64,000 nucleotides of DNA from Zancudomyces culisetae HAW-14-8 (GCA_052426225.1 JBNJNM010000006.1:682001-746000); one strand, 5' to 3'; counted from the first letter of the stretch, positions 39,089 through 64,000 are shown. A program made the numbers and translations. Notes: generated by a model not told the origin, from the sequence alone.

Positions 39089-39347
39089 TTGAACAATTAT
39101 AATTTGAATAGAAATCGATCAAAGGTGGGGATGTATGAATCATTATGTACTTTATAGCAGTTATCTTGAAATATTATACAATACAGGTTCTTTTAAAAGC
39201 ATAATACAGAAAAATAGCAACCAGCAGTTAAAGTATTGTGTTATCAGAAAATACACTTGTATTTATGGTGGATTGATTTAACTTGACTTCAAGTGTTGGG
39301 ACACTCAAATACAAGTAGTACACATGTTTACAAAAAACTATAAATAG
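39089..39347 (+). promoter_or_regulatory. Upstream region ending in the TATA box TATAAATAG; identical to 61667..61925
   Basis: 259-bp direct duplicate (offset 22578) upstream of both secreted-repeat genes. Confidence 0.8.
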
Positions 39348-39508
39348 TCAACTTTTAGTGTTAACATTTGTAGTTTAAACTAAACAAGTGTTTTCTATTT
39401 TGACTTTTAATTACCACAAAAATAGTAAAAGACAAAAGGGTTTTATGTTAAGAAACTAGTTTAAAGAAATTACATATTAATAAAGCTAATACAAACAAGT
39501 AATTAAAA

Positions 39509-41389
39509 ATGAAAGTTTTAATAACTACATTAATACTTGCTTCGCTCAAAGTAGGGGTAAACGCAGCCGCGATACGCCATGAGCCAATGCAACTTAGAGG
39601 CTACGAACCAGCTACAGATCAGGATATGGCATACTCACATACGTTAGAGAATGTATACCCAGATACTACTAATGTAAAGGAGTATAACTCAGAAGTTTGT
39701 CCAAAATACTACCGAAGAAGATATGGTGGTGGTGGTGGTCGTAGGAGTCATATGAGAGGGCGTGGACAAAGACTGGGACGTGTAGGAGTGAGTAGAGCTG
39801 GTGGAATAAATGGGAATTGGTGGAAGCATGGAAATAATCAAATAAGAAGGAAAAACCATGGAAATAGTGGTAAAAATAGGGGTAAAAGTAAAAAAAACAT
39901 AGCAGCTAGTGGCAGAAATAGAAGTACCAATGCAAGGAATACTGGTGTCGCAAGAAGTTTGTTAAGTACAAATGCCAAAGTTAGTTCGACTGGAAATGAA
40001 AATAGAGGAACCAGCAGTGGCAATAGTGGAAACAATAATGAAAACAGTGCAGCTAGCAGTGAAAATAGTGAAAACAGTAACGGCAATAATAGAAACAGCA
40101 GTGGAAATAGTGGGACCAGCAGTGGAAATAGTGGGACCAGCAGAAATAATAGTGAAAGTATTAGTGGAAACAGAGGAAATGGTAATGGTAATAGCGAAAG
40201 TAGCAGTGGAAACAACAGTGGTAATAGTGGAAATGGCAGTGGAAATAGTGGGGATGGCAATGGCAGTGGAAGTGGAAGTGGAAGTGGAGGTGGAGATGGC
40301 AGTAACGGAAATGATAATGGAAGTGGCAATAGTGGCAATGGCAGTGGAAATAGTGGAAGTGGTAGTGGCAGTGGCAGTGACAGTGGAAGTGGAAGTGGTA
40401 GTGGAAGTGGAAGTGGTAGTGGAAGTGGAAGTGGAGGTGGAGGTGGCAATGGAGATGGCAGTAACGGAAATGATAATGGAAGTGGCAATAGTGGCAATGG
40501 CAGTGGAAATAGTGGAAGTGGTAGTGGCAGTGGCAGTGACAGTGGAAGTGGAAGTGGTAGTGGAAGTGGAAGTGGTAGTGGAAGTGGAAGTGGAGGTGGA
40601 GGTGGCAATGGAGATGGCAGTAACGGAAATGATAATGGAAGTGGCAATAGTGGCAATGGCAGTGGAAATAGTGGAAGTGGTAGTGGCAGTGGCAGTGACA
40701 GTGGAAGTGGTAGTGGAGGTGGCAATAGTGGCAATGGCAGTGAAAATAGTGGTAGTGGAAATAGTGGAAGTGGTAGTGGTAGTGGAAATAGTGGCAGTGG
40801 CAATGGCGGTGGAAGTGGAAGTGGAAGTGGAAGTGGAAGTGGCAATGGAGATGGCAGTAACGGAAATGATAATGGAAGTGGCAATAGTGGCAGTGGCAGT
40901 GGCAGTGGCAGTGGAAGTGGCAGTGGAAGTGGAAGTGGTGGTGGAGGTGGAGGTGGAGATGGCAGTAACGGAAATGATAATGGAAGTGGCAATAGTGGCA
41001 GTGGCAGTGGAAATAGTGGAAGTGGTAGTGGCAGTGGCAGTGACAGTGGAAGTGGTAGTGGAGGTGGCAATGGAGATGGCAGTAACGGAAGTGGAAATAG
41101 TGGAGGTGGTAGTGGAGGTGGCAATGGAGATGGCAGTAACGGAAATGATAATGGAAGTGGAAATAGCGGAAATGGAGGTGGCAATAGCGGAAATGGCAAT
41201 GGAGGTGGAGGTGGCGAGAGTGAACATGATCATGAGCATAAAAATAAGGATAAACACGGCCATGGTCATGACCACAATGATGATCATAGAGATCATGACA
41301 AGGGTATTCCAGTACTTGCAGATGTGGTTGACGTTGAGGTTGTTATTGATACTAATGCCCATACTAATAACACTACTATCACTGAGTAA
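39509..41389 (+). CDS. Secreted Gly/Ser/Asn-rich repetitive protein, paralog 1 (signal peptide, propeptide ending in RRR, basic RG block, GS/GN repeats, His-rich tail)
   Basis: MKVLITTLILASLKVGVNA signal-like N-terminus. 159-nt (53-aa) repeat units start at 40292, 40451 and 40610. The tail reads EHDHEHKNKDKHGHGHDHNDDHRDHD. Confidence 0.85.
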   Translation: MKVLITTLILASLKVGVNAAAIRHEPMQLRGYEPATDQDMAYSHTLENVYPDTTNVKEYNSEVCPKYYRRRYGGGGGRRSHMRGRGQRLGRVGVSRAGGINGNWWKHGNNQIRRKNHGNSGKNRGKSKKNIAASGRNRSTNARNTGVARSLLSTNAKVSSTGNENRGTSSGNSGNNNENSAASSENSENSNGNNRNSSGNSGTSSGNSGTSRNNSESISGNRGNGNGNSESSSGNNSGNSGNGSGNSGDGNGSGSGSGSGGGDGSNGNDNGSGNSGNGSGNSGSGSGSGSDSGSGSGSGSGSGSGSGSGGGGGNGDGSNGNDNGSGNSGNGSGNSGSGSGSGSDSGSGSGSGSGSGSGSGSGGGGGNGDGSNGNDNGSGNSGNGSGNSGSGSGSGSDSGSGSGGGNSGNGSENSGSGNSGSGSGSGNSGSGNGGGSGSGSGSGSGNGDGSNGNDNGSGNSGSGSGSGSGSGSGSGSGGGGGGGDGSNGNDNGSGNSGSGSGNSGSGSGSGSDSGSGSGGGNGDGSNGSGNSGGGSGGGNGDGSNGNDNGSGNSGNGGGNSGNGNGGGGGESEHDHEHKNKDKHGHGHDHNDDHRDHDKGIPVLADVVDVEVVIDTNAHTNNTTITE

Positions 41390-42179
41390 GGTTATGGTGA
41401 GGTGTCAAGTGGTATCTACAATAGCAAATTTATATCCTATTTCGCCAAAATTCAAGCTGACTAATTATTTGAGCACACATATTTCTTTATTTTTATCCTC
41501 GATGTTGGGGTTGATACTACATTTCAAAAAGGCTTTATTTGCCGGATTTCCTCCTACGATTCATAATTAGTAATTTGACAAATATAAGTTCATAAAAGCT
41601 AATAAATATTTAAAACATAAAAACCGTTCTGCCAAGTGCATGAAATATCTGTTTCTCATATTTATAAATACCTTTCTTGCCTTCTCCACCTTCCAAGACA
41701 AGGCAAATTGCGTCTTAAACATACTATCCCGTTTTTTTTGCCACCCCCATCACTTTTTAATTATTCTAGCAAAGAAGAAAGGGAAATTATTAAATAATCC
41801 ACAACAAAGCTGAACAGTAAAACCATAACTAAAGACTGTTTTTTATATACAGTAGTTTGTATCTTATATAATACTGATATACTGATATACTGAAATCATA
41901 ATTTTTGTTTATCGGAGATAGCACTTTTGAAAACACGGGAAAGTTGATCTGAGTTAACAACCAAGAAGGGCTGCCCGTTTAAATGTGAGATATCAACTAA
42001 AAACCTTTTTAGGGTCAAGCTTATGAAAAAATATTACACAAAGACAAAAGCAAGAACACCAAAGTAATGCAGCCTGCCAGAAGGTACATCTCAATTTATA
42101 GTTGTGAAAAGTAAATGCTTGATACACAACAAGCTAAATCAGCTATGGAGATTTACTATGACGCTTATATGAAAGATAA

Positions 42180-43230
42180 TGTCAAGTATCAGCAACATAT
42201 GAGTTCAAACATGCAGGTCTAGTTGATTATAGACGGAAACACAGAGAAAATAATATGGTTTGACCACTTTGATATTCTTGTCAATGACCTTACAGATAAC
42301 AGCAGAGATTCTACTAACAGACATGAAATGGGTTTTGTCCAGACAACGGACGAGAAGGATTTTCTCAGGAGATAACAGAGGTTTTAAATAATACCCAAAC
42401 AACAAGGCAGTAAGTATAGACTAAATACAAGCTAAACATGGAAGATTACACTAGGAGAGGAAGAACCAACTACACCCATATGGCTCGTAGTGTTCAAGAT
42501 GGTTAGCAGAACCTTTGAAACGGGTGAGATAGTCGAGAGGTGGAGCACTATTATTTTGGTTCCAGTACCCAAGAAAGGCAATTTCACTGACCCTAAAAAT
42601 TATTGCGGCATTTCGTAATACCAACCATGATAAAACTTGTAGTCAGGTTGGTTGCAGCAATACTAGATAAAGAAGATAATAGAATAAAAAAATAGCAAAA
42701 GAACAAGCGGGCTTCAGAAACCGAGAAGAGTGTGTAGCTCAAGCTACTTCTCTTTATGAAAGTGTCAGAATACAAAAACTGAACAAAAAAGAAACTTGGG
42801 TAGCGTTTATTGACTTTGCAAAGGCGTAATACAAAGTGCCTAAGAAGCATGCTAGCTAGTTTAATGCCGGGGGATAAGAAAAAATTACCTTAACATATAA
42901 AGAATCATACAAAACATCTTAAATGAGCGTTAAAGTCGGAGGGGAATTGTCCCCAGTCCTAAAATATGATTGTGGTATGAGGCAAGTTTTACCATTGTCG
43001 CCGTTTCTCTTCGATAATACATTAACAATATATTTAGTTGGATAAAAGGAGTAACAGTACCAGGCTTACCTAATTTGGACCTCGGGAATAACTAAAATAC
43101 TATGTTAGTTTTTTGCAGAGGACTTTATTGTGTTTATGAAACACCAGAATAAATGGAAATATCTTTTAATATGAGTAGTACCTGAGCATAATTATTAAAT
43201 GTCTGTAAACGCCTGATAATGCGGAACAAT
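42180..43230 (+). pseudogene. Degenerate non-LTR (LINE) reverse transcriptase fragment
   Basis: Interrupted frames give WSTIILVPVPKKGNFTDPKNYCGIS*, KEQAGFRNREEC, AFIDFAKA*YKVP and GMRQVLPLSPFLF. Boundaries are approximate. Confidence 0.8.
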
Positions 43231-44367: not shown

Positions 44368-44677
44368 TGTCACGATTGACGCTAGATACGGTTGTTGCTT
44401 GGAAATATATTATTTGGATAAGATAATATTTTATCTCTTAGAATTTCATAGCTAAAAAATATTACTATATATATTCAAGTATTATTACTTATAAAAGCAT
44501 GTACTAATATTATAATTAATTATTGTAAAATTAATATTAATGTATAATTTTGATTTAGTGTTAGTATCATTACTTAAGTAAATGATTAAAACAACAAAAT
44601 GTTTCAATAAAAATAAGTGTTTTGAATCAGTATTGTAATGATACTAAGTAAAATCTTATCATGTCATATTCATGACA
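44368..44677 (-). mobile_element. Solo LTR, family A (inverted relative to 45491..45803)
   Basis: TGTCA...TGACA termini; the reverse complement aligns end to end with 45491..45803 with scattered mismatches. No TSD. Confidence 0.75.
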
Positions 44678-45183: not shown

Positions 45184-45473
45184 TGTCATGATCCATTCAT
45201 GACATTTTTGCTATTTTTAATAATTTGGTTTTACCCCATATTATTAAATGTTAACTGTGGAGTTGACAGTTAATATTATTTAGTTTTAAGTTATAGTTTA
45301 AGTATAGTTATTATTATGTTTTACAATTAATTTTGTATATTTTAAAACTATATAAAGACAAGGATTTTATTGCTTTAGGAAACTTTAGAAATAAAATACT
45401 TATCATCTCATAGTATTATATTAAATAAATCATAGCCAAGTAAACAAATAGTACTTAGTGTCAAGTCGTGACA
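45184..45473 (+). mobile_element. Solo LTR, family G (short variant)
   Basis: TGTCATGATCCATTCATGACA...TGTCAAGTCGTGACA. Homologous to 54036..54429 and 59378..59773 but lacks a ~100-bp internal segment. Confidence 0.85.
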
Positions 45474-45490
45474 GTTGGTATCTAATTTCG

Positions 45491-45803: not shown

Positions 45804-46750
45804 ACAAGTTAGACTTCAAATACATTGGTCCATTTGAAATTATTGAGATGGTCAACCCGGTAACTGCTAAACTCAATGTTAGAACTAGATATATTAATTA
45901 ATAACTTGATTTAAGAAAAATATTAACTTTATTAAACTAAAGAGAATATTTTTCACTGACGATTTCCACAACAAAATTCGTTGGGTTTATATACTTTTTC
46001 GTCAGCAAAAATTTCATGAAAAAAACCAAGGTCGCAAGACCTTGTTTATCGAAGAAAAAATATTTTCTTACTTCGATAAACATTCAAGGAGTTTGTCATG
46101 ATCCAATCATGACATTTTGGGGAAACCCAAAATTATTTCGTTTTTGGGGCAAAACAAAAACGAAATCAATTTTGGGAAAAAACCAAAATAAAATTAAATT
46201 TGGGTAAAATCAAAATTAACCACATTTTGAGAAAAAGATAATTATCCACATTTTGGGTAAACCAAAATTGGTTAACATTCTTTTTCAATTTCCCAACCCC
46301 CAACTCATTATTAAATTACATTTAATATCGAGTTGTGCTGTTTGTTTCATGCCTAGTGTCATAACCATAAAATATAATTAAATTCTAGACCGTTGTGTCT
46401 ATTTATTTTATTGGTAAGTTTAAATTACGAATTTTAATTAATAAATTCGTAATTATCATTTCATGATTTTCTAAAACATTCTAGAAATTTTATTATTACA
46501 TAATAATTTTAATAATAAGTTCCTGTCTAGAAAATTTTGATTAGTAATCAAGCGATAGAAGCAATAATTTTTATTCAAGTTTCTAACTTTTTTATAAGTA
46601 TAAAAACCCTAGTTTTTTCCTTAAAATTTCTATTCCTTATCTGACAACAATTGTCTTATATAAATAAAAAAAAATAGTACTAAACTAAATATTCCTAAAC
46701 CAGTTTTGACAGTTTGTCAGATCCATAACAGTTTACTACTATTCCAAGCC

Positions 46751-47713
46751 ATGTCGGACACACACATTGAAGATTTAGACGCACCAGTCATGATGACTGT
46801 CCGCGAGTACAACGAACTCCATCGCATGTTTAACCGTCTAGGAGACTTGCAAAGCCGTGTAGACTCTTTAGCCAACCCTGGACACGTTCAATCCATGACC
46901 GTTTCTCGTGAACCCAGAGTAGCAGATCCCGAATACTATAATGGTAACAGAGATCATCTCCGCAATTTCATTTCACAAGTCAATCTCGTAATCGAAGCAC
47001 AGCCATCTCGGTTCCCTTCAGACAAGCAAAAAGTTGTTTTTGCATCTACCTTCCTTCGTGGTGCAGCCTTCTCGTGGCTACAACCCTACCTCGAGTCCCG
47101 TACACCGGTACCTATGCTTACAGATTTTGAACTATTTACTGAAGAACTACATAGAGTGTTTGGCAACCCACATCAAGCGTCTACTGCCGAAAGACAATTA
47201 AGAAGGCTTCGCCAAACCAATTCTGCTGTCAACTACGCGACTGACTTCCGTCGCCTTTCTACGTTAACCAATTGGAACGACTCCGCCCTTTGTAGCCAAT
47301 ATTATGAAGGACTCAAGGATGAAGTCAAGGATCAACTGGCAAGATTTGACAGACCTGAAAACCTCAACGAACTAATTGATCTTTCTATCAAGGTAGACAA
47401 CAGACTCTTTGAAAGACAATTAGAAAGAACCCATCGCAGCCGCTTCGCCTTTAACCAGCCTACAATACCCAGATCAGACCCTACAAGTCCACACCAACCA
47501 CGCACACAGCCCATGGAAATTGACGGAACATCCACACGCCGCCCACCCATAACACCTGAAGAACGCCAAAGACGCCGTGACAACAACCTCTGCTTGTATT
47601 GTGGTAACCCTGACCACATCATAGCGATCTGTCCCAGACGCCCACAAAATAGATCCACAATTACTCTCGCTGCCACCACCACACAGGAAAACTCTCCAGC
47701 CCAGAACGTTTAA
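46751..47713 (+). CDS. gag: Gag of element D (PEG10/sushi-like capsid plus CCHC zinc knuckle)
   Basis: [61 protein letters not shown] and [14 protein letters not shown]. Confidence 0.93.
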
Positions 47714-50700
47714 AGGACGTACCTCTGGGCTTTATCGAACATTACAAACCGTCCTCCCCTGGTCCAATCCCACAAGTTCTGAACCTTTATTCCACTTCTT
47801 ATCAACCGGAATCTACCCACCAAGATTTTGACGACTGCCTTATTAATTCTAAAATTTTTGAACCTGAACCTGAATCTGAACCTGAATCTGAACCTGAACC
47901 TGAATCTGAACCTGAACCTGAATCTGAACCTGAACCTGAACCTGAACCTGAACCTGAACCTGAATCTGAACCTGAACCTGAACCTGAATCTGAACCTGAA
48001 CCTGAACCTGAATCTGAACCTGAACCTGAACCTGAACCTGAACCTGAATCTGAACTTGAATCCTATATGTTATCTGAATATTCATCATACCTTGACTCCG
48101 ATTCCGAAAATGAATTGGACCTCGAATCCCATCTCGTACTTAATAATTTACCATCTGCAAGAACAAACTCGAACAACTTTGATGATATCAATACTTTTAC
48201 AATTGATCAACCACTGACGTCTATAATGACTTCGACTACTAACGAACATTTAGTAATCCCTGTTACCTTATTCATAGCCAACAAGAGCTTAAAACTAAAT
48301 GCTATGATCGATTCCGGTGCCACTAGCTGTTTTATTGACTCCGAGTTTGCTATTAAAGTTAACATCCCGCTACTAAAGAAAGAAGTTCCTATCCCACTAT
48401 TAGTAATCGATGGTAGATCAATTTCATCTGGATCTATCACTCACAACACAATTCCTTTACAACTACAAACATATCACCATCACGAAACGATTAGTTTTGA
48501 TGTAACTAAGTTAGGTAAATACTCATTGATTATTGGTATTAACTGGCTTAAACTTCATAACCCACAAATCGAATGGCCTAAGGATAAACTGGATTTTAAC
48601 TCAGAATTTTGCAAAAGTAATTGTAATAATCCTTTACAAATATTTGCAAACATTAGTGATCTGGATAATGCTCCTATGAATCTCGTAAACCACAATCATA
48701 TTGATTCGAAATATGTATCCATCCCCCCTGAATACCTAGACTTCCAAGATATATTCGACAAAACCTTCTCCGATCAATTACCTCCTCACAGGTCATACGA
48801 CCATAAGATACCCTTAGAACCTAATTCGGTACCGCCATTTGGACCCATATACTCCCTATCGGAACTAGAGTTATCGGCACTTAGAGAATATCTTAAGGAG
48901 AATTTAGATAAGGGCTTTATCCGATCTTCGTCGTCACCAGCCGGTGCACCTATACTATTTGTAAAGAAAAAGGATGGTTCGCTAAGGTTATGCGTAGACT
49001 ACAGAGGGCTAAACAAAGTAACAATAAAGAATCGATATCCTCTACCTCTTATCAGCGAACTCCTAGACAGATTCAGACAAGCTAAGATATTTACAAAGAT
49101 AGATTTACGTGGCGCCTACAACTTAATAAGAATTGCTGAAGGCGAAGAATGGAAAACGGCATTCCGAACCCGGTATGGGCATTACGAATACCAGGTCATG
49201 CCTTTTGGCCTCTGCAACGCTCCTGCTTCTTTTCAACACCTTATGAACGACGTTCTATCTGATTGTTTGGATAAATTCGCAGTAGCTTACTTAGATGATG
49301 TCCTTATATATAGTAACCACCTTGAAGATCACATCACTCACGTCCGAGAAGTACTTTCACGTCTACGAAAATACTCATTATATGCAAAATTAGAAAAATG
49401 CACATTTCATAAACGTAGCGTAGAGTTTTTAGGATACATTGTCTCTGATGACGGCGTACAAATGGACCCATGCAAAACAGATGCCGTTAACAACTGGCCC
49501 ACCCCAACCTGTGTAAAAGATATTCAGTCTTTCCTCGGGTTTGCAAATTTCTATCGCCGATTCATCAAAAACTTTTCTGCAATCGTTACCCCAATTACTA
49601 AACTACTTCGAAAAAATATGAAGTGGGACTGGTCCGACATAGCTCAATCCTCGTTCGAAGCTCTGAAAAAGGCTTTCACCTCTGCACCAATATTGAAATA
49701 CTTTGATCCGAACAAACCTATTACAGTAGAAACTGACGCTTCCAATTTTGCTCTGGGAGGAGTAATTTCACAGACAGACGAAAATAATATTATGCATCCC
49801 ATCGCATACTATTCACGGAAGCTACAGCCCGCCGAATTGAACTATGAAATTTACGATAAGGAGCTTCTTGCAATAGTTGAAGCATTCAAGGAGTGGAGAG
49901 CATATCTGGAAGGTGCGCAACATCAAATAACAGTTATTACTGACCACAAAAACTTGGTCTACTTCACTACAACGAAAACACTGAACCGACGACAAGCAAG
50001 ATGGTCCGAACTTCTAGGAAATTATGACTTCGTAATCAAATATGCACCTGGATCTCAAAACGGAAAACCTGATGCTTTATCTCGTCGTCCGGACCATTAC
50101 CCTAAAGAGGGGGATGGTGCTATAACTAACAGTAACGTTCTATTAAAGCCGGAACAATTGATTATTTCAGCAGTAGAACGACTACAAAACAATGATAACT
50201 TGATAACAGATATTGAAAATGCCTACTCAATAGACCCCTACGTCTATACCATATTCAAACACCTACAAAACCCTAAGCTTAGACCTCCACCTATTTTATC
50301 AAAACGCCTGTCTGACTTCAAATTAACCAATGGACTACTATTTTACAAAGGACTACTTTATGTACCAAATAGTAACAACATCAAGCTACAAATACTCTAC
50401 AACCATCATAACTCAAACACTGCTGGTCACTTAGGAGGATTAAAGACCTTAGAACTCATCACCAGAAATTATTACTGGCCAAGCATGAGAAGATTCGTAG
50501 AAGATTACATAGCAACTTGCGACCTATGCAATAGATGCAAAATTTCACGACATAAACCATATGGATACCTGCAATCCCTACCAGTGCCCCTTAAACCATG
50601 GGAGTCCATATCTATGGATTTTATTGTGAGCTTACCTGACTCCCATGGATATAATGCTATCTTAGTTGTTGTAGATCGGTTTACTAAGATGTCCCATTTT

Positions 50701-51684
50701 ATACCAACAACAAATACGATTAGTGCTTCCCAAACTGCTAAACTGTTTCTCACTCACATATACCGACTACATGGTCTCCCCACAAATATTGTATCTGACA
50801 GAGGTTCTATATTTACTTCAAAATTTTGGTCAACCCTCATGAAACTACTAAACATAAAAACAAATTTATCCACAGCCTTTCATCCTCAGTCAGATGGCCA
50901 AACCGAGCGTGTCAACCAGGTTTTAGAACAATACCTACGATTCTACTGTAACTACAATCAAAACAACTGGTCCGAGCTGCTGTCGCTAGCTGAATACTCC
51001 TATAACAACTCACAACATTCTACAACGAAGTTCAGCCCTTTCTTCGCTAACTTTGGATACCATCCAACTTCTCTCCCCAACTTAAAGATATCATCCATAT
51101 CACATTCACCTGCAGCATCTGACCTCGCTTCCATCATTTCTATTACACATAAAAAGTTGATCCAAAATATAAAAGAAGCTAATACTAGATATGCTAAAGC
51201 ATATAACAAGAAAAGAATGCAACCCCCTGACTTCCCTATCGGTTCATTTGTATGGCTCAACAAAAAATACATCAAAACTACTAGACCAAACAACAAGTTG
51301 GATTATACTAAAATTGGTCCATACAAAGTCATCCAAAAAGTTGGAAACTCTGCCTACAAGCTGGAACTGCCGGACTCCATGCGCATACATCCAGTATTCA
51401 ATATCTCACTTCTGGAACCAGTCGTAAGAAAAGAAACCATGGATCGTATTCAAGAAACCCCTCCCCCTATAGTTATAAATGGTCAAAATGAATATGAAGT
51501 AGAACAGATACTTGATAGCAGAGTCAGGTACAACAAGCTTGAGTACCTAGTTGATTGGAAGGGATACGATATAGACTCTAGATCGTGGGAACCTGCCATA
51601 AACTTAGAAAATGCACAAGAGTTAGTCAAGGACTATCATCTGCGGAACCCCACAAGACCTAAGCCTCGCGGTGCTCACCATTAA
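47686..51684 (+). CDS. pol: Pol of element D (PR-RT-RNaseH-IN-chromodomain), entered by -1 frameshift
   Basis: The -1 frame is open from 47686. Motifs: [32 protein letters not shown] zinc finger, SMDF/SDRG/QTER, GPY and the chromodomain [22 protein letters not shown]. Confidence 0.93.
47860..48060 (+). repeat. (GAACCT/GAATCT)n hexamer array encoding poly(Glu-Pro/Glu-Ser) in the pol frame
   Basis: About 33 tandem hexamers, in frame with pol. Confidence 0.9.
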
Positions 51685-53203
51685 AGAGGGAGATACTGTC
51701 ATAACCATAAAATATAATTAAATTCTAGACCGTTGTGTCTATTTATTTTATTGGTAAGTTTAAATTACGAATTTTAATTAATAAATTCGTAATTATCATT
51801 TCATGATTTTCTAAAACATTCTAGAAATTTTATTATTACATAATAATTTTAATAATAAGTTCCTGTCTAGAAAATTTTGATTAGTAATCAAGCGATAGAA
51901 GCAATAATTTTTATTCAAGTTTCTAACTTTTTTATAAGTATAAAAACCCTAGTTTTTTCCTTAAAATTTCTATTCCTTATCTGACAACAATTGTCTTATA
52001 TAAATAAAAAAAAATAGTACTAAACTAAATATTCCTAAACCAGTTTTGACACCTAGTTATTTATTGTAGTTAAATTATATTTGAATTTAAAGTGAGTTTT
52101 AAAACTATAAATACTTAGTGATTTTATTGTAAAGATCTTTAGCAATAAAATAACAACTTCTTTAACTATAGTTTTCGACAATAAATTAAATAATAATATC
52201 ACTCAGTTGTCAAGTCCTGACAGAGTTTGACCCTTGATTAGTTTCATGATTTTCAATGTTGGGGTTTAGTTCAACATTGTTTTGTTTTGGTTATGTAAAA
52301 TAAAAACAGTTACTAAAAATCGAATATGTAATAAATGAATTTCATGATTACCTAAATCAATTTATGTAACTTTACTAAAATGGAAATTCAACTTACTAAT
52401 TTAATTAAACTAAAATAGAAATAAAATTAATTAAAAATAAATTATAGAACTACGTTCTATTCATAACACTCAAGCTACCTGACAATATGAAAATTCATCC
52501 CGTCTTCCACGTGTTCCTGCTTAAACCTCATAAACAGACACCATATTCAAACCGTACCCAACCACTCCCACCTCCTATCATAGTAGACAATCAAGAAAAA
52601 TACGAAGTATCTTCTATCCTGGACTCCAAGTTTGTTAAAAGGAAGTTAAAGTATCTGATTGATTGGAAAGGATACAGTCCTGAAGATCGGACATGGGAAT
52701 ATGCTGAAGACGTTCATGCACCTGACCTCGTTACCAAGTTCCATGCCAGATATCCAGAAAATCCAAGACCGCGTGCCAGCATTAGAGAGGGATGATGTCA
52801 TGATTTATCATGCCTTTTGAAATTAAATACACGTGTTGTATTTAATTACCAAATTGCTGCGCAATTTTCTCAAATATCATTTTGGGAAATTAATTTTGTT
52901 GATTGCGCAGTAGATTAGGTAATTTAGAAACGTGTTAAAATTACGACATTTTGCTGCGCAATTACACGTTTTACATTACTAATCAATTGATTATTAATCA
53001 TTCTAGAATTCTAACATTCCAGAATTTTCTATATAGTTATAACAATGTTTTTCATAGTTTTTTAGTAGTTTTGGAAAAGTATATATAGCCATAGATTTTA
53101 TTGAAAGAGAACTTCAGCAATAAAATATCTTCACAAGATATATACTACTTTAAATAACTTATTAAAATAAAATAAAATAATACTTAGATGTCAGGTCCTG
53201 ACA

Positions 53204-54035: not shown

Positions 54036-56324
54036 TGTCACGACTTGACACTAAGTACTATTTGTATTAACTATGGCTATGACTTATTTAATAAAATACT
54101 ATGAGATGAAAAGTATTTTATTGCTAAAGTTTTCTAAAGCAATAAAATCCTTGTCCTTATATAGTTTAACAATATACAAAATTAATTGTAAAACATTATA
54201 AAAACTATACTTAAACTATAACTTAAACTAAATAATATTAACTGCAACTCCGCAGTTAACATTTAATAATATGGGGTAAAACCAAATTATTAACAATTAT
54301 TAATTCTTACTCCATAATTAATAATTTAAGGATTAAGAATTAAAGCGGAGAAAACGTTAATAAATTTAACATTTGCTATTTTTAATACCATATTAAAAAT
54401 AGCAATAATGTCATGAATGGATCATGACATCACTCCCCTCTAATGCCTACTCAAGGACCTGGCTTATTCGGATATTGGTTGTGGAAGTCGGCTACAATTT
54501 CAGGGGCGTGAACATCTGATGCGTCTTCCCATGTTCTATCCTCAGGTGCGTATCCTTTCCAGTCGATTAGATATTTCAATTTACCTTTGGATATTTTAGA
54601 GTCGAGTATAGCAGCTACTTCTTACTCTTCTTGGTTATCAACAATAACAGGTGGAGGTGGTAGTTCTTGAATACAGTTAAACATTTCAGTGGTCTTCTAT
54701 GGTTTCAAGAGTGATAAATGAAATACAGGGTGTATTCTCATGGTTGCAGGAAGTTTGAGTCTTGCAGCTACTGGGTTAACCATCTCAATGATTTCAAATG
54801 GTCCGATGTATTTGAAATCCAGTTTTTGAGATGGTTTCATGGTTTTAAGATTGGTTTGAGACAACCAAACCTTATCTCCTGGACTGAAAACAACTTGAGG
54901 TTTTCTTTTGCGATCAGAAACCTCTTGTAGTTCTCCTTGGCCTTACTTAGGTGTAGTTTTAACTCAGTTGAATAGTTTGTAGATGACTAGCAAACTCCTG
55001 AGCACTTGGGACATTGGAATCCCTGGAATTGCTAATATTAAACTGGGGGTCATACCCATAATTAGCATGGAATGGACTGACTTTAGTACTAAAATGAGTT
55101 GCATTGTTGTAAGCAAACTCAGCCATTGGAAGCAACTGACACCAATTATCTTGTTGATAGTTAACAAAACACCTCAAATACTGTTCAAGTATTTGATTGA
55201 TGCGTTCAGTTTGACTATCAGATTGTGGGTGGTATGCAGTAGAGTGATGAAGTTTGATGTTTAGAAGTCGAGAGAGTTCGGTCCAAAACTTGGATACAAA
55301 CTGTGTGCCACGATCAGATATAATGCTACTTGGAAGTCCATGTAGTTTAAATACATGATCCATAAAACTAGAAGCAGTAACAGAAGCAGATGGTGTACTT
55401 TTGAGTGGAATGAAATGAGCCATCTTGGTGAGACGATCCACAACAACCAGTACAACAGTGTTGCCCTGTGAACGTGGTAGTTCCACAATGAAATCCATTG
55501 ATACTGATTCCCAAGGACGATTGGGAGTATTCAATGGCATTAAGAGTCCCGATGGCTTAGTAGTGATGTGTTTTGCTCGATTTCAGGTATCGCAAGAGTC
55601 AATGTAGTCTCTTATTGTGACTTTCATGTTTGGCCACCAGAACTGACGTGAAACCAAGGACATAGTTTTAGCGTGACCAAAATGACCAGCTGGCAGTGAG
55701 TCAGACACATGGCAAGAACTTGAAGACGCAGTGATTCAGGAACAAACATCCTATCGTTGTACAATAAGATTTTATCAGAACAGGAGACTTTTGAGTTGTT
55801 TAGAAGTTCTTGAGCTTGAGTATCAGATACAGTAATTGCTTTGATTTGAGAAATGATATCACTAGTCTGGCTGGTTTCAATAGCTGCAATTACAAACTTG
55901 GGTTGCCAGATAGGTCTATCTTCAAGATTCACCCCCTCCTTATGCTCATCCTTCCTAGATAGAGCATCTGCTTTACCGTTTTGTGATCCTGGACGGTAAG
56001 TAAGCTCGATATCAAACCGGGTTAGGAACAGGGCCCATCTTGCTTGACGCTGATTTAGAATCTTGGCGGAGCGGAAATACTCAAGATTCTTGTGGTCGGT
56101 GATGACCAAAACCGGATGAGAGGCACCTTCTAGATGATGTCGCCACTCTCGAGGGCACATTTGATGGCTAGTAGTTCCTTGTCATAGATGTGGTAGTTTC
56201 TTTCAGCAGGATTCAGCGTTCGGGAATAGAAAGCTACAGGATGAGTTTCGCCATTAATTTTCTGAGATAACACAGCTCCTAGAGCAAAGTTGGATGCATC
56301 ACATTCGAGGAGAAACTGAGTTTC

Positions 56325-56574
56325 TGTAATGGCCAATCAGGTGACATCTAACCTCCTATAACATTTATTCTAATATTTACTTAGTATTTAATTAATAACA
56401 TTTGCCTAGCTGTAATTCCTTAAGAATTACAAAATGTCACTGAACGAGTTTTATTAGTTAAACAGGTTGTAATTCTTAAGGAATTACAGCTAGGCAAATG
56501 TTATTAATTAAATACTAAGTAAATATTAGAATAAATGTTATAGGAGGTTAGATGTCACCTGATTGGCCATGACA
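56325..56574. mobile_element. 250-bp foldback (MITE-like) element with 108-bp arms, TG...CA ends and the 5-bp TSD GTTTC
   Basis: Arms 56325..56432 and 56467..56574 are reverse complements with one mismatch. Removing the element restores pol HPDPET|[10 protein letters not shown]. Confidence 0.9.
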
Positions 56575-57645
56575 GTTTCTGGGTCAGGATGTGAGAGAAC
56601 GGGAGCTGTGGTACATTGTTCCTTGATATTTTCAAACGCAGATTGTTGTGCTGAGCCCCAGATAAACTGGGCATTATTCTTGAGTAAGGAGGTAATCGGA
56701 GTAACAATACGTGAGAGTTCTTGGATAAAACGGCGATAGAAGTTAACAAATCCAAGGAAGGATTGGATGTCCTTGACTGATTTTGGTGTATCTCAATCCA
56801 ATATTGCAGATACTCGAGACGGATCCATGACTAGGCCTGCAGGTGTGATTATGAAGCCTAAAAACTCTACTCTTTCTTGGTCAAACTCACACTTTTCAAG
56901 TTTGGCGTAGAGTTTGTGAGTAATCAGTCTTTCTAAAACAGTACGAACATGAATAGTATGTTCTTCAGGTGTTGCAAAAAATACCAGAATGTCATCAAGG
57001 TATATGACAACATAGACGTCTAGGATATCACGAAAAACGTCATTGACAAATGATTGAAAGGTTCCAGGAGCATTAGCCAGGCCGAATGGCATAACTTTGT
57101 ACTCAAACTGACCATACTGTGTTCGGAAAGCCGTTTTTTCTTCATCGCCTTTCCTTATGCGTACCAGATTGTACGCGCCACGCAGATCAAGTTTGGTGAA
57201 GATTTTGGCAGATTGAACTCGTTCCAGTAGCTCAGTCATCAACGGTAAAGGATACCGGTTACGTTTGACGACTTTTTTTAGAGCTCTGTAGTCCACAACT
57301 AGTCTTAAAGAGCCATCTTTTTTACCTGTGAAGAATACAGGGGCTCCAGCAGGTGATTTCGAGCGGACTATGAAACCTTTTGCAAGGTTTTCATCGATGT
57401 ACTCTTTAAGCGCTGTTCGCTCCTTTGGTGCAAGTGGATAAATTGGTCCATACGGTAAGGCGGCATTGGGTAACAGATCGATTGGGCAGTCATAAGGGCG
57501 ATGAGGAGGTAGAGTATCGGCCTTTTGTTTGTCAAAAGCTTGGCTGAGGTCTTGATATTTACTTGGAATAGTAGCAGTTAAGGAATCAGGAGGTGGTGAA
57601 ATTGGTTTGGCTTGTTTTATCATGCCTATCAAATTATAAAGAAGA

Positions 57646-58057
57646 TGTCAAGATCTGGAGTCAGGAGAGTTATATTTATTATTATTAAAGTTTATTGTAT
57701 GAATGTATACAAGATACTAGATACTGAATCCAAGACAGGTAAATTGTACCCTTTTTATACTTTTTTCCAGCCTTGGTTTTTGAACAAAATCACTATGAAA
57801 ACTGCGGAATAGCTAAAAATGCAAGTTAAAGTAAAACGTGTTTGATTACTAATCAAATTGGATTAGTAATCAAACAAAAATCAAATATGAATGCTAATAA
57901 AATTAAACATGTGTAAATTATTACGTAAGAAAAATTAATAAATAATGTGAATTTTCGGTATGTTCTAGAATGTTCCCCAACATTCTAGAACATTACTGCG
58001 GATGTAAATCAGATGATTCTAGAACGTTTTCGAACATTCTAGAATCAGTTCATGACA
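57646..58057 (-). mobile_element. Solo LTR inserted between PR and RT of element F
   Basis: TGTCA...TGACA termini, AT-rich, TATAAAAA and AATAAA on the minus strand. No TSD found. Confidence 0.7.
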
Positions 58058-59377
58058 CGGCACTTTGAATTGAGATTTCGCTGATATCGGAACTTGGTGA
58101 GTAGTACAGCTCAGAATCCAACGAATACACTGATTCAAGTTCGTAATCAAAATCTGTTTTATATTCTAGATCAGAATTTTTATCATCATTTTCAGAATAT
58201 AGTGCGGATTCAGATTCCTGAACTTGAACTTCAACTTCTTTACTGAGCCTTAACTGTGGTGTTTCTTGAAGAGTATTATGGTTCTGGTCTTGACATTGAT
58301 CAGTGTTTGCTTGTACTTGGCTGTGACTGTGACTGTGGCTGTGACTGTGGCTGTTGCTTTTCTGGCTTTGAAATTTCTGGACTTGGCTGTGGTTTTTCTC
58401 GGAGTACGTTTCCTTTTGACCATGGCTGTAGTTTTCCTGGCTATGAGTTTGTTGTTCTTGGCTATGAGTTTGTTGTTCTTGGCTATGAGTTTGTTGTTCT
58501 TGGCTGAGAGTTTTTTGTTCTAGGCTGTGAGTTTTGGTGTAGTTGTGACTTTCATGGTTGTTGGTATCATTATTTTGGATTACTACTGGTGGCATTGGAC
58601 TTGGACCTGGCAAATTAGTTATGACTTGACTGTGGCTTTCTTTGAGTTTGGCTTTCTTTGAATTACAATTTATCAGACAGTATTTGGAATTTAAGCTGAT
58701 CTGTCTTCTTTTCCAATGGATCGATGGTTCATGTTCTTCTAACCATGGAAGTCCCAGAATTATGTCAACATGATAAGACGTAATTATTTCAAACGTGGCA
58801 GTTTCGTGGTGTGCACCAATGTGAAATTCTAGTGGATGGGTATGGTGTGTAATTGGTCCAGAGTTCATAGACGTACCATCAATAAACTCAACTGGAATAG
58901 GAGTTGACTTTGGTTTGGTTGGAATAGAATTGTCAATAACAAACTTCTGGTTTATGAACAAACCAGAAGCACCAGAATCTATCATGGCAGTAACTTGTAG
59001 TCTCACACCATTTGGAAGGTGTAGGCTAATAGAAACGAGGAAACGGTGTGGATTGTAGACGTCTCGAATGCTGCTAACTCTATGGCTAAGTTGATTGGAA
59101 CGGGGGAAGTCTCTTGGCGCAGTGTTTTGGTTCAGGATTGGCTTCCCAATTAAGCCTGAACCCGGTGGTTTCCCTGTTTGATTTTTTTCTGTTTCTCGGG
59201 ACAGGTGGTAACTTGGTGGCCTTCTCCGCCGCAGTAATAGCAGAGACCAAGTTTCATTCTGCGTTCTCTCTCGGTTGGAGAGACGACACGCTGGACAGCA
59301 TCCACTTGCATCGGTTCTGGCTGAGAGCCGGTGGCTTGTACATAAGGCTGAATGCCTCCTCTTCTTCTGGCTTTGTC

Positions 59378-59773
59378 TGTCATGATCCATTCATGACATT
59401 ATTGCTATTTTTAATATGGTATTAAAAATAGCAAATGTTAAATTTATTAACGTTTTCTCCGCTTTAATTCTTAATCCTTAAATTATTAATTATGGAGTAA
59501 GAATTAATAATTGTTAATAATTTGGTTTTACCCCATATTATTAAATGTTAACTGTGGAGTTGACAGTTAATATTATTTAGTTTTAAGTTATAGTTTAAGA
59601 ATAGTTATTATTATGTTTTACAATTAATTTTGTATATTGTAAAACTATATAAGGACAAGGATTTTATTGCTTTAGAAAACTTTAGCAATAAAATACTTTT
59701 CATCTCATAGTATTTTATTAAATAAGTCATAGCCATAGTTAATACAAATAGTACTTAGTGTCAAGTCGTGACA
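59378..59773 (+). mobile_element. G-family LTR (long variant), inverted relative to the 3' LTR of element F
   Basis: Near-identical to the reverse complement of 54036..54429. It truncates gag of F and abuts DIRS YR sequence. Confidence 0.88.
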
Positions 59774-60250
59774 ATAAGGCTCACGGTTGTGGCACCTAAA
59801 GAGAAACGAATGGGCCTATCCATCACCAAGACAGTCACTATCCACAAGCATTCACTCTCATACTTATGCCCAGTGCTAACATACATCGAGTATGTTAACA
59901 GATTGGGTCCAGATGCATTTACATCTGCATCACCCCACCCTAGGAACAACAATACCAACATTGTCTACCTCATCAGGGCGATCAACAACAAGAACAACAA
60001 AATCGGAGCACAGAGGATCGGTAAACATATAAATTTCTTTATTGATTTGATTAAATTACCGAAAGGAATCAAAAGACCTAAAGCTAGGGCATTGGGATCT
60101 ACAATCGCAACGGATGCAGGAGCAAACATCGATGATATAGTCGCACATGGATTTTGGTCGTCTAGACTCGTCTTTGATTCGCTCTACAGATTGTCACGAG
60201 AATCTCGAACCAATCTAACCGAATCTATATTTAGGAATAAATATGGATGA
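59774..60250 (+). mobile_element. DIRS tyrosine recombinase C-terminal fragment
   Basis: APKEKR, LCPVLTYIEYV and KARALGSTIA..AGANIDDIVAHGFWSS..VFDSLYRL, including the catalytic Tyr region. Confidence 0.8.
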
Positions 60251-60252
60251 AC

Positions 60253-60832
60253 ATCAAGCGTATTTTTCCGATTGAAGAACTATTACAATATGGTTGAATG
60301 TAAATGAAAACCATAAGTAATTGTACGAAGAGGAAAAATATGCTTGATCCCACTCATCCACTCCCAATATACACCTGCTCAAAAAACAATTACTCGATTT
60401 AAGATTAGAGATCAGATTGGATAGATTGGTATCGAAATTTCGATTTTCCAATTATTCGCCCTATATTACTATTATTTATATTATTTACTATTATTATTTA
60501 TTACTATGAGTGTAATAATTGATAAGCAGTGTACTACGCGTGGACTACGCGCATATTACTGTAGTCAAATAGTAGCACTGAAGTAGTCCAAAACATAGCA
60601 CGCTGCAAATGGTGAAGAATTTCAAATAAAGTACGATAGTCAGATTGATCGTTATTTGCGAAAATATTTTATAAGCAAAAATTACTGATAAAATTTCTAC
60701 TATTTTTATTATCTTAATTGGTGAATCAAATTATAATCATATTTGGTGAGTAATTTCGAATTGAAATAAAGACTGTGCACATCAAGTGTATTTTCCTCTT
60801 CGTACAATTTGGTATGAATTTTCATTCAACCT
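60253..60832 (+). repeat. DIRS 3' structure: internal complementary region (~60253..60348) and right terminal repeat (to ~60830)
   Basis: 60301-60348 is complementary to 60781-60828 (core AATTGTACGAAGAGGAAAA / TTTTCCTCTTCGTACAATT). 60253-60269 is complementary to 60332-60348. Confidence 0.72.
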
Positions 60833-60949
60833 AATTGTTTGTAGAAATCAATTAATAATAAATACTATTTAGAACATTAATCTTTATGCAGAGTTTGCAT
60901 GGTCCCAACTTATTCATTGACAATTGTCATTTAGCAACGTTTTTCTAAA

Positions 60950-61600
60950 TCCGTATATTGTCATCTATTAGATGGTCTTATAAATAATTTAAACTCTTTC
61001 AAAACGATTTTAAAATTCCATTCCATTGTTATTGGTATTTAGTAGTATGTTTTCTGTTCTCCCATTAAGTAAATTCCATATTGTAAATCCATGAGTATTT
61101 TTTCTCCCAGGTATTTACCTTTTCAACTTTAGAGTGTGTATGTATATGTCGTATATGATTCTATCTTTGTGGTTATTATTGTCATTGTCTCGTAAAAAGT
61201 CAGATATTTTAACCAGTACTCTCTTAATCGTTTGCATTCATATCTCAGTGTTTATTGTGTATTTTTTTTTTTGAGGAGTTACAGTTACTATTTCATTATT
61301 TATTAAACCATTTTATTTTTTATCATAAATGTATACTTTTCAAATTTTTATTGTATTTGTTCCTAATTTTTGATTCGATTGTGATACAAGCCTCACAGTA
61401 GTATTGTGTAGTCTCGAATAATATGTGTGGTGCGTTGTTTTTTAATCATCAGCTTTACCGATTGTTTATGTGGTGTTGTGATTGTATTATGATAATTGTT
61501 AAAAATAGTGGTTTTTAATCATAATTAAATACCACAATGGATTGTATCCTTGTAAGGTCTGGTGTTTATCCAAAAATAAATTTTTTTGGCTTTATAAAAC
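60950..61600 (-). pseudogene. Possible highly decayed LINE RT remnant
   Basis: Scattered minus-strand remnants in the expected order: LQG..., KADD, KYLG, KLFIRP. Many stops. Confidence 0.3.
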
Positions 61601-61666
61601 ACACAAAGATGGAAAATTATCGAAACCGCAAAAGGGTTGCGTTATATTGAATAGGAAATTTAGTGA

Positions 61667-61925
61667 TTGAACAATTATAATTTGAATAGAAATCGATCAA
61701 AGGTGGGGATGTATGAATCATTATGTACTTTATAGCAGTTATCTTGAAATATTATACAATACAGGTTCTTTTAAAAGCATAATACAGAAAAATAGCAACC
61801 AGCAGTTAAAGTATTGTGTTATCAGAAAATACACTTGTATTTATGGTGGATTGATTTAACTTGACTTCAAGTGTTGGGACACTCAAATACAAGTAGTACA
61901 CATGTTTACAAAAAACTATAAATAG
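61667..61925 (+). promoter_or_regulatory. Duplicate upstream/TATA region of secreted-repeat gene 2
   Basis: Identical to 39089..39347. Confidence 0.8.
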
Positions 61926-62085
61926 GCAACTTTTGTGTCAATAATTTTTAACACAAAACCCCCTCCTAGTATATCCTATTCCTATATATAATACTAATAA
62001 CATAATAAAATACGAGAATTTTATGTCAAGAAGCTAGTTTAAAGAAAATTTAATTAATAAAGCTAATACAAACAAGTAATTAAAA

Positions 62086-64000
62086 ATGAAAGTTTTAATA
62101 ACTACATTAATACTTGCTTCGCTCAAAGTAGGGGTAAACGCAGCCGCGATACGCCATGAGCCAATGCAACTTAGAGGCTACGAACCAGCTACAGATCAGG
62201 ATACGGCATACTCACATATGTTAGAGAATGTATACCCAGATACTACTAATGTAAAGGAGTATAACTCAGAAGTTCGTCCAAAATACTACCGAAGAAGATA
62301 TGGCGGTGGTGGTGGTGGCGGTCGTGGAGGAGGTGGAGGATTTAGCGGAGGACGAGGAGGAGGTGGAGGATTTGGCGGAGGATATGGAGGCGGAGGATTT
62401 AGTGGGGGACGTGGAGGCATGGGTGGATTAAGTGGGGGACGTGGAGGAGGTGGAGGATTTGGCGGAGGATATGGAGGCGGAAGATTTAGTGGGGGACGTG
62501 GAGGCATGGGCGGATCTAGTGAAGGACGTGGAGGCATGGGCGGATCTAGTGAAGGACGTGGAGGCATGGGCGGATCTAGTGGAGGACGAGGAGGCATGGG
62601 CGGATCTAGTGAAGGACGTGGAGGCATGGGCGGATCTAGTGGAGGACGAGGAGGCATGGGTGGATCAAGTGAAGGATATGGAGGACGTGGTGGACGTGGT
62701 GGAAGTGGTGAACGTCAAGGAACTGGAGGAGCTAATGGAGACAGTGGAGGGCGTGGAGGACGTGGAGGACGCCAAGGAACCGGAGGAGCTAATGGAGATA
62801 GCGCAGGACGTGATAATAACCAAATGAGCGGAGGAAGCAATGGAAATGAAGCTGGAAGCACGAGCCCAAATCAAAAAAATTCAGCACCTGAAAGCAGTAG
62901 TGGAGGTGCCAATACTGCAAACGTTGGTGCCGCAAGTAGTGATTCAGGTAGAACTGCTAGAGCAATGGGAAGTGGTAGTGGTAATGGTAATGGAAACATC
63001 GGAAGTAACAATGGCAACGGCAATAGCAGTGGTAGTACTGGAAATGGTAATAACAACACTGGAAATGGTAATGGCAATGGCAACACTGGAGATAATAATG
63101 GTAATGGAAATACTGGAAATAATAATGGAAGTGGCAACACCGGAGATAGCAATGGTAATGGCAACACCGGCGATGGAAATGGCAGTACTAACAATGGAAA
63201 TAATAATGGCAGTGGAAACACCGGAAATAACAATGGTAATGACAACACTGGAAATAATAATGGTACTGGAAACGCTGGTGACAACAATGGCAATGGTAAC
63301 GCTGGAGATGGCAATGGTAATGTCAACAGTGGAAATAACAATGGCAGTGGCAACACCGGGGATAACAATGGCAATGGCAACACCGGCGATCTTAATGGAA
63401 GTGGTAACACCGGAGATAGCAATGGTAATGGCAACACCGGCGATGGAAATGGCAGTAATAACAATGGAAATAATAATGGCAGTGGAAACACTGGTGACAA
63501 CAATGGCAACGACAACACTGGTGATAATAATGGCACTGGAAACACTGGTGACAACAATGGCAATGGTAACGCTGGAGATGGCAATGGTAATGTCAACAGT
63601 GGAAATAACAATGGCAGTGGCAACACCGGGGATAACAATGGCAATGGCAACACCGGCGATCTTAATGGAAGTGGTAACACCGGAGATAGCAATGGTAATG
63701 GCAACACCGGCGATGGAAATGGCAGTAATAACAATGGAAATAATAATGGCAGTGGAAACACTGGTGACAACAATGGCAACGACAACACTGGTGATAATAA
63801 TGGCACTGGAAACACTGGTGATAACAATGGCAATGGTAACACAGGAGATGGAAATGGTAACCTTAACAGTGGAAATAATAATGGCAGTGGCAACACCGGG
63901 GATAACAATGGCAATGGCAACACCGGCGATCTTAATGGAAGTGGTAACACCGGAGATAGCAATGGTAATGGCAACACCGGAAATAGCAATGGAAGTAATA
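62086..64000 (+). CDS. Secreted Gly/Asn-rich repetitive protein, paralog 2 (3' partial; runs off the window and is absent from the ORF track)
   Basis: ATG at 62086; the first ~76 aa are nearly identical to the 39509 gene. RGG/GGM 30-nt repeats follow, then 27-nt NTGDNNGNG-type repeats in 270-nt higher-order units (63361, 63631, 63901). No stop seen. Confidence 0.88.
   Translation, partial: MKVLITTLILASLKVGVNAAAIRHEPMQLRGYEPATDQDTAYSHMLENVYPDTTNVKEYNSEVRPKYYRRRYGGGGGGGRGGGGGFSGGRGGGGGFGGGYGGGGFSGGRGGMGGLSGGRGGGGGFGGGYGGGRFSGGRGGMGGSSEGRGGMGGSSEGRGGMGGSSGGRGGMGGSSEGRGGMGGSSGGRGGMGGSSEGYGGRGGRGGSGERQGTGGANGDSGGRGGRGGRQGTGGANGDSAGRDNNQMSGGSNGNEAGSTSPNQKNSAPESSSGGANTANVGAASSDSGRTARAMGSGSGNGNGNIGSNNGNGNSSGSTGNGNNNTGNGNGNGNTGDNNGNGNTGNNNGSGNTGDSNGNGNTGDGNGSTNNGNNNGSGNTGNNNGNDNTGNNNGTGNAGDNNGNGNAGDGNGNVNSGNNNGSGNTGDNNGNGNTGDLNGSGNTGDSNGNGNTGDGNGSNNNGNNNGSGNTGDNNGNDNTGDNNGTGNTGDNNGNGNAGDGNGNVNSGNNNGSGNTGDNNGNGNTGDLNGSGNTGDSNGNGNTGDGNGSNNNGNNNGSGNTGDNNGNDNTGDNNGTGNTGDNNGNGNTGDGNGNLNSGNNNGSGNTGDNNGNGNTGDLNGSGNTGDSNGNGNTGNSNGSN

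Follow-up and report, generated by a model that had tools for sequence, protein, structure and literature searches.

The 64,000-nucleotide (nt) stretch of DNA analyzed here (JBNJNM010000006.1:682001-746000, contig C6; the window) belongs to a 27.1-Mb assembly, in 25 contigs, of Zancudomyces culisetae, a species with a reported PacBio HiFi assembly (27.2 Mb, 26 contigs; PMC12611240, 2025). An earlier reading of the window from its letters alone (the sequence-only reading) had singled out two co-oriented genes with a common promoter and leader and had considered, as a condition, a Harpellales host; the genome is indeed that of a Harpellales fungus of the mosquito gut, and an open reading frame (ORF) scan places the two starts at 39509 and 62086, with 22,577 nt between them. 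These genes, copy 1 (w1) and copy 2 (w2), are two of exactly seven in the genome, and the seven form a previously undescribed and real family of predicted secreted, modular Gly/Asn-rich proteins. The two genes and their 5' ends are laid out as follows.

39509-41389, plus strand: copy 1 ORF, 626 amino acids (aa)
39089-39356, plus strand: copy 1 promoter block, 268/268 nt identical to 61667-61934
39357-39475, plus strand: divergent patch of copy 1, probably the transcription start and 5' untranslated region (5'UTR), 119 nt with about 54% identity to copy 2
39476-39739, plus strand: second identity tract, 98% (260/264) to 62053-62316, covering the end of the 5'UTR and the leader
39509-39565, plus strand: predicted signal peptide of copy 1, 19 codons ending V-N-A, rule-based
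39566-39721, plus strand: propeptide of copy 1, ending PKYYRRR, with the RRR codons at 39713-39721
From 62086 past the window end, plus strand: copy 2 ORF, 939 aa at full length (L011:2001-4820)
61667-61934, plus strand: copy 2 promoter block, from the repeat search
62086-62298, plus strand: copy 2 signal peptide (62086-62142) and propeptide, the latter ending RRR

The two promoter blocks are identical from end to end, TATA box included, as the sequence-only reading had recognized, with the correction that they span 268 nt and its 259 nt was too short; within them TATAAATA lies at 39339-39346 in copy 1 and at 61917-61924 in copy 2. The leader comprises residues 1-71 in both copies, of which 3 differ, ends KYYRRR and runs on into YGGGGG, and the alignment confirms that the copies part just past RRRYGGGGG. 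At its N-terminus the rule-of-thumb features of a signal peptide are present, namely an n-region MK, a 15-residue hydrophobic core (mean Kyte-Doolittle >2) and V-N-A before the predicted cut. The propeptide that follows is Tyr-rich, measures 52 or 70 residues across the family and lies on the acid side, if more mildly than had been supposed: its isoelectric point, basic end included, lies at 5.2-7.0 for the four genes of the long type, to which both window copies belong, and near 4.9-5.0 for the remaining three. PKYYRRR, proposed earlier as a Kex2/furin-type site, is invariant in 7/7 genes, the 23 nt that encode it being identical in all of them down to the synonymous sites, and the genome encodes one kexin gene with S8 (subtilase) and P domains. 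Secretion and kexin processing of the family proteins are plausible from these features.

Beyond the processing site, inspection of the translations agrees with the order of Arg/Gly block, linker and repeat, and with the repeat motifs, that the sequence-only reading had given. The body of copy 2 consists of the following blocks.

62299-62805, plus strand: Gly-Arg-aromatic block of FSGGRGGMGG / FGGGYGGG units with 14 RGG motifs
62806-63072, plus strand: linker and irregular start of the repeat (NQKNSAPESS..AASSDS)
63073-64000, continuing past the window, plus strand: phased nonapeptide array, G-[NS]-G-N-[TA]-G-[DN]-x-N

Outside the window copy 2 goes on with polyGly (67 residues), an (HG)n block, a two-Cys domain and about 14 YT[AT]EPKA heptads. 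Its array holds register over 40 units with zero indels, and G1, N4, G6 and N9 are invariant, two Gly positions using three or four codons; between the 270-nt higher-order copies of the array, the nonsynonymous rate (dN) is 0.10 vs a synonymous rate (dS) of 0.53-0.57. N9-G1 followed by Ser or Thr at position 2 creates an N-glycosylation sequon in 18 of the 40 units.

That further leader-sharing members should exist had been anticipated, and a six-frame search with the 76-aa leader and a search of the whole genome with the 268-nt promoter as DNA query matched the same seven loci and no others. Besides the pair in the window these are:

c21a (L012): 885 aa
c23 (L013): 872 aa
c21t1 (L014, one of a tandem pair): 565 aa, with (GGS)n in the place of polyGly
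c21t2 (L014, second of the tandem pair): 527 aa, without the linker
c15 (L015:2644-3960, minus strand): 438 aa, a truncated dispersed copy

All seven share a promoter of about 430 nt in which the TATA box is invariant, and the promoter block is homologous in 7/7, at 65-82% identity for the more distant paralogs. Five genes (w2, c21a, c23, c21t1 and c21t2) carry the full block order, which runs from a signal peptide-like start through the Tyr-rich propeptide, PKYYRRR, an Arg/Gly/Phe/Tyr block built of FSGGRGGMGG-type units and a linker (in four of the five) to a strictly phased array of 9-residue Gly/Asn repeats, polyGly or (GGS)n, (HG)n with KDKHRHGHG, a segment with two cysteines and a Tyr-rich tail. 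The two-Cys segment is short, hydrophobic and conserved, GIPV[VL]ADVV..VVDT..KDC..EYGD..KC, and the tails are made of 4-14 YT[AT]EPK[AS] heptads in three genes and of YTSKHE-type repeats in two. RGG motifs number 5-14 per gene, alongside 9-15 Phe/Tyr in the same block, in six of the seven genes, with none in copy 1. The seventh locus, c15, matches c21t2 at 97% identity across promoter and leader; it breaks off once the repeats end, and the sequence beyond is unrelated. Conservation is thus of the whole architecture and the C-terminal end and reaches beyond the leader alone. The "constant leader, variable cargo" of the sequence-only reading does not survive this comparison, since in five genes the blocks come in one complete order and the C-terminal domain is conserved. 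The contrast between the window copies had looked so strong because copy 1 is a degenerate, early-stopped paralog whose 5' end has been homogenized with that of copy 2, and the conserved C-terminal end had been missed because copy 2 leaves the window.

Gly makes up 31-37% and Asn 15-23% of residues across the family, and the mature chains, at 32-80 kDa, contain 0-2 Cys and 0-2 dibasic pairs; the long mature members have 8-21 N-x-S/T sequons each. Four paralogs (L011:4080-4280, L012, L013 and the second gene of L014) contain uninterrupted polyGly of 47-73 residues, encoded by DNA of the (GGAGGAGGT)n type. To our knowledge, such run lengths are unusual for any protein. Hydrophobicity over 19 residues peaks inside the chain, at the Asp-containing GIPV[VL]ADVV segment; neither a transmembrane segment nor a hydrophobic C-terminus of the glycosylphosphatidylinositol (GPI) type was found in the family proteins, whose ends are hydrophilic (..IYATKIQAD, ..SKHKTY). 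Between subfamilies the leader gives dN/dS of 0.3-0.5 at dS of 0.28-0.53, a range that indicates purifying selection on the leader, and the C-domain gives 0.2-0.5 between paralogs at dS up to about 1.

Copy 1 departs from this architecture along most of its length, as the following features show.

39722-39958, plus strand: collapsed, A-enriched remnant of the RGG block and linker, aligning in frame to c21t1 at 70-77% DNA identity
39959-41215, plus strand: Ser/Gly/Asn/Asp array in 159-nt higher-order units
41216-41386, plus strand: eroded His-rich block and GIPVLADVV hydrophobic segment, from the C-domain alignment
41387-41389, plus strand: premature stop, TAA vs TAC in four paralogs (the Tyr of the EYGD motif)
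41390-41464, plus strand: relic of the old C-terminus, in frame, 24 codons to ..AKIQAD and the ancestral TAA at 41462-41464
41465-41993, plus strand: conserved family 3' flank, 93% to the copy 2 flank and 84-92% to three other paralogs

The TAA that ends copy 1 stands 25 codons ahead of the ancestral stop, and homology of the 3' flank starts only past 41464. In the remnant, 29 of 57 substitutions relative to c21t1 go to A, which accounts for 41% of bases vs 23-30% in the paralogs. Both cysteine codons are replaced, RGG motifs and long polyGly are missing, and the hydrophobic segment has the 4-residue shorter GIP-VLADVV form that copy 1 shares with the c21t genes. A frameshifted copy was considered and ruled out, since the region after RRR aligns in frame. 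By these alignments copy 1 is evidently a deeply diverged, degenerate paralog that has lost the RGG block, polyGly, both cysteines and the tail.

The state of copy 1 raises the question of whether the family, or at least this gene, consists of non-functional low-complexity ORFs carried along by segmental duplication and gene conversion, with composition alone holding their frames open. The nonsense codon at a conserved Tyr and the loss of both Cys, the RGG motifs and polyGly in copy 1 are what such an origin would leave, as are the cut-off of c15 after the repeats, other copy 1 frames that are open for 450-530 codons and a mosaic of flank identity that fits frequent conversion. Set against these are the dN/dS values of the leader and C-domain, the invariant processing site and TATA box, and repeat residues that are invariant despite synonymous variation. 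Even within copy 1, the 159-nt higher-order copies give dN/dS of about 0.15-0.7 (e.g. dN 0.047 vs dS 0.31), and dN below dS in these repeats counts against simple decay. We therefore regard absence of function as improbable, and as unlikely for the family as a whole; for copy 1 alone, that it is a young pseudogene instead of a truncated working variant comes somewhat short of an even chance.

The relationship between the two window genes changes abruptly along their length. Through the promoter tract the two do not differ at all, and both match c21a and c23 at 81-82%; across the 5'UTR patch the identity of copy 1 to each of the paralogs is only 53-57%, that of copy 2 to c21a and c23 being 76-77%. 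The leader then returns to a dS of 0 between the window copies vs 0.17-0.53 to other paralogs, and the C-domains of copies 1 and 2 stand at dS 0.80. The tandem pair c21t1/c21t2 repeats the pattern, with 99.9% identity from -425 to +300, C-domains at dS 0.33 and unrelated 3' flanks. Because identical tracts surround a patch of about 54% identity while the C-domains are distant, and the same is seen at c21t1/c21t2, the near-identical promoter and leader of the window genes are best explained as the probable footprint of gene conversion from a neighbor. The 5' end of copy 1 would thus have been overwritten by copy 2, as opposed to a leader having been swapped between unrelated proteins. The 3' flanks are likewise mosaic, w2-c21t1 at 95% exceeding w2-c21a at 91%. 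Derivation of the copy 1 5'UTR patch from the c21t subfamily was ruled out by its equal distance to all paralogs.

Outside this genome the family is almost invisible. Among 15 billion catalogued proteins the sole match to the leader is OMH80465.1, a 35-aa Z. culisetae protein whose contig (LSSK01001175.1 of GCA_001969505.1) ends 35 codons into the gene and, along 3.1 kb, matches one paralogous locus at 99.4% identity. The family had never been described because this older short-read assembly broke at the repeats. A word-index search with the leader found no homologs, a leader profile search of 1.84 billion cluster representatives found only the same 35-aa fragment and a spurious satellite translation, and a leader search of metagenome contigs found none. 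Word-index searches with the C-terminal domain also found none, these being length-limited such that shorter fragments or fusions could escape. Pfam, searched up to E = 10, gave no match except a chance Alanine_zipper (E = 0.32), the ESM Atlas no usable match, and a profile search of the PDB chance matches only, the best being a streptococcal M protein repeat (E = 0.0077). A confident match to a characterized family, which the sequence-only reading had named among the findings that would refute its proposal, did not appear in the Pfam, protein, ESM Atlas or PDB searches. The family is provisionally restricted to Z. culisetae, other Harpellales having been covered through predicted proteins from assemblies that probably break at such repeats.

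Several known classes resemble the family in part. Fungal Kex2-processed repeat proteins (KEPs) share a signal peptide, a basic processing site and tandem repeats, but in KEPs each repeat is followed by a dibasic site, and numerous small peptides are set free (PMC6339444, PMC7329392); membership in that class was ruled out by the single RRR before the body and the 0-2 dibasic pairs in the mature part. The RTX beta-roll (PF00353) likewise has a nine-residue period, a Gly/Asn/Asp-rich composition and a G-x-G-N core. In the family, however, the Ca-binding Asp and the hydrophobic position of the GGxGxDxUx motif fall out of register, AlphaFold2 yields no roll for copy 2 and Pfam returns no match up to E = 10, and the RTX class was ruled out. 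GPI-anchored adhesins of the Als, Flo or Mad1 type were set aside on the hydrophilic C-termini and the lack of a Pfam domain, and hydrophobins on 0-2 Cys vs an eight-cysteine pattern, in chains of 32-80 kDa. The family does fit a class defined loosely by composition, that of secreted glycine-rich proteins with structural or adhesive roles: at least 20% Gly, signal-peptide features and no Pfam domain are all found here, and Arg and aromatic stickers in Gly-rich spacers occur in 6/7 genes, copy 1 excepted. Within this class the family is a new one with an unusual combination of blocks.

We interpret the seven genes as encoding secreted, modular, largely disordered Gly/Asn-rich proteins that form an extracellular matrix, with the 5' identity in the window produced by gene conversion, and assign this reading a probability of about 0.6. 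Each protein would enter the endoplasmic reticulum, and late in the secretory pathway the single kexin would cleave behind RRR and remove the propeptide, leaving a mature polymer that begins YGGGG or NGGGG. Outside the cell the mature chains would self-associate by means of contacts between Arg and aromatic residues, protonation of His or its binding of metal, and possibly cross-links between Tyr residues. Near neutral pH the charge of the (HG)n block would change, and the Tyr/Lys/Pro heptads together with nine tyrosinase loci leave room for oxidative cross-linking. The outcome would be an extracellular matrix, for which the most attractive candidates are a pH-triggered spore glue or holdfast and a trichospore appendage.

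A check for a 3,4-dihydroxyphenylalanine (DOPA)-type system found the YT[AT]EPK[AS] heptads in three genes, the YTSKHE-type repeats in two and nine tyrosinase loci in the genome. These tyrosinase-domain loci are spread through the 27-Mb genome on contigs C8, C10, C11 and C23 (e.g. L018 and L019), and one has in-frame stops.

Several points weigh against the matrix interpretation or its adhesive extension. Single-sequence AlphaFold2 gives the copy 2 repeat a mean predicted local distance difference test score (pLDDT) of 28 with no secondary structure, and the c21t2 repeat and C-domain a mean pLDDT of 37 with weak strands at a 27-residue period; models lacking confident structure are compatible with disorder and show nothing positive, and they speak neither for nor against a beta-solenoid. 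Low-complexity DNA is open in several frames by composition alone, so that ORF length is weak evidence, and it is for this reason that the evidence of selection (dN/dS, the invariant site and the repeat register) matters. The assignment to an adhesive or appendage is a reasonable hypothesis drawn only from composition and host biology. In addition, the only published Harpellales adhesin candidate is a fasciclin-domain protein, unrelated to the present family (PMC5954228). This candidate, FISCoG.g2, is like the proteins described here predicted to be extracellular and has been proposed for gut attachment, but it is globular, carries a FAS1 domain and is conserved across fungi that live with insects (PMC5954228), unlike a family that has no domain match or outside homolog.

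The extension itself holds that the seven genes encode Harpellales holdfast-glue or trichospore-appendage material in the form of a kexin-activated, pH- or metal-switched block copolymer, a proposal we put forward tentatively. Its blocks would be Arg-aromatic stretches for coacervation, Asn/Gly nonapeptides, about 70 Gly, an (HG)n switch and Tyr/Lys/Pro heptads, and the whole would have converged with animal underwater adhesives. Harpellales spores release glue in certain gut pH conditions, the glue protein not having been identified (PMC5954228). A close analogy is with a tick cement glycine-rich protein, which phase-separates via regularly spaced Arg and Phe/Tyr in a Gly-rich chain and ages into an adhesive gel (PMC11794139). 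As in the fungal family, it combines a signal peptide with a disordered Gly-rich chain, spaced Arg and Phe/Tyr (FSGGRGG / FGGGYGG in the fungus) and Ser/Asn spacers, and its AlphaFold confidence is low outside the signal peptide (PMC11794139). The two nonetheless lack sequence homology and differ in size, 77 residues vs fungal proteins of 40-80 kDa, and the propeptide, nonapeptide array, runs of 47-73 Gly, (HG)n and two-Cys domain belong to the fungal family only. Squid beak HBPs and the jaw proteins of Nereis and Glycera are His/Gly-rich and load-bearing or coacervating, and mussel foot proteins are built of Tyr/Lys/Pro tandem peptides. The family resembles these in its Gly/His blocks, possibly switched by pH or metal, and in its C-terminal Tyr-Lys-Pro-Thr tandems (YTAEPKA), but is not homologous to them, and its His block is short. 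We know of no such material protein described from a fungus.

The same composition could also belong to general glycine-rich structural proteins of the cell wall or spore wall, possibly heavily N-glycosylated and with no role in attachment or appendages. Gly at 31-37% and Asn at 15-23%, the 8-21 sequons of the long mature members (with 18/40 units in copy 2) and a copy number of seven that suits a bulk structural product all agree with a wall protein. Pfam, however, shows no known wall-linkage domain and there is no GPI-type C-terminus, while (HG)n, Arg-aromatic stretches and Tyr/Lys/Pro heptads are more usual in adhesives that respond to a trigger and in materials switched by metal or pH; we consider a wall role doubtful. 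The His block invites yet another explanation, that the proteins are secreted into the gut lumen to bind metal, buffer pH or act as antimicrobials and form no material. Known antimicrobials include Gly/His-rich peptides, and (HG)4-9 with KDKHRHGHG concentrates 9-13 His in a short stretch. This stretch is, however, a minor part of proteins of 40-80 kDa, chelation needs neither long phased repeats nor polyGly, and internal dibasic sites that could free small peptides are lacking, making a luminal role of this kind quite improbable.

The proteins by which Harpellales adhere to the cuticle of the hindgut in larval mosquitoes and black flies, and those of their coiled spore appendages, have so far been unknown, and this species-restricted, promoter-sharing family supplies concrete candidate genes for attachment or appendage material. 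If adhesive, it would be a fungal counterpart of the tick, mussel and squid material proteins. Independently of function, the locus is a clear case of conversion holding neighboring promoters and leaders identical while the repeat bodies diverge. It also shows how a whole gene family can be hidden in a short-read assembly, in which the 35-aa fragment alone was annotated, until long reads resolved the repeats.

The remaining features of the window lie between and around the two genes. Flank homology stops at 41993 and is back by 60079, leaving about 18 kb between the conserved flanks; this spacer holds at least two Ty3/gypsy elements, and the 22.6-kb spacing of the genes includes such insertions.

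46354-51993, plus strand: apparently intact Ty3/gypsy element with identical long terminal repeat (LTR) ends of at least 300 nt, gag at 46706-47713 and pol at 48067-51684
54959-59390, minus strand: degraded Ty3/gypsy element with protease, reverse transcriptase, RNase H and integrase in separate broken ORFs
60079-61666, plus strand: upstream flank of copy 2, about 88% over 2 kb to c21a and c23

The element at 46354-51993 has the layout of a Ty3/gypsy retrotransposon, an LTR pair enclosing gag and a 1205-aa pol, and Pfam recognizes gag, protease, reverse transcriptase, RNase H, integrase and chromo domains; a (CTGAAC)n array occupies 47859-48060, between gag and pol. Both retroelements are bracketed by 226-nt direct repeats (45213-45438 and 59510-59735, 96% identical), which may be the LTRs of an older outer element that others entered. 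A tRNA gene as the target of this pile was looked for, and none was found in 36000-64000. The conserved 3' flank contains no credible ORF. Upstream of copy 1, 37793-38525 (about 730 nt) matches at 81-94% a sequence that other members have about 1.06 kb downstream, and the region looks like either a tandem-pair spacer whose upstream gene is gone or a shared repeat element. Still farther upstream, the ORFs at 33334-34731 and 36081-37076 are ordinary neighbor genes, which from their translations we take to be a flavin adenine dinucleotide-dependent monooxygenase (squalene epoxidase-like) and a membrane protein split by introns.

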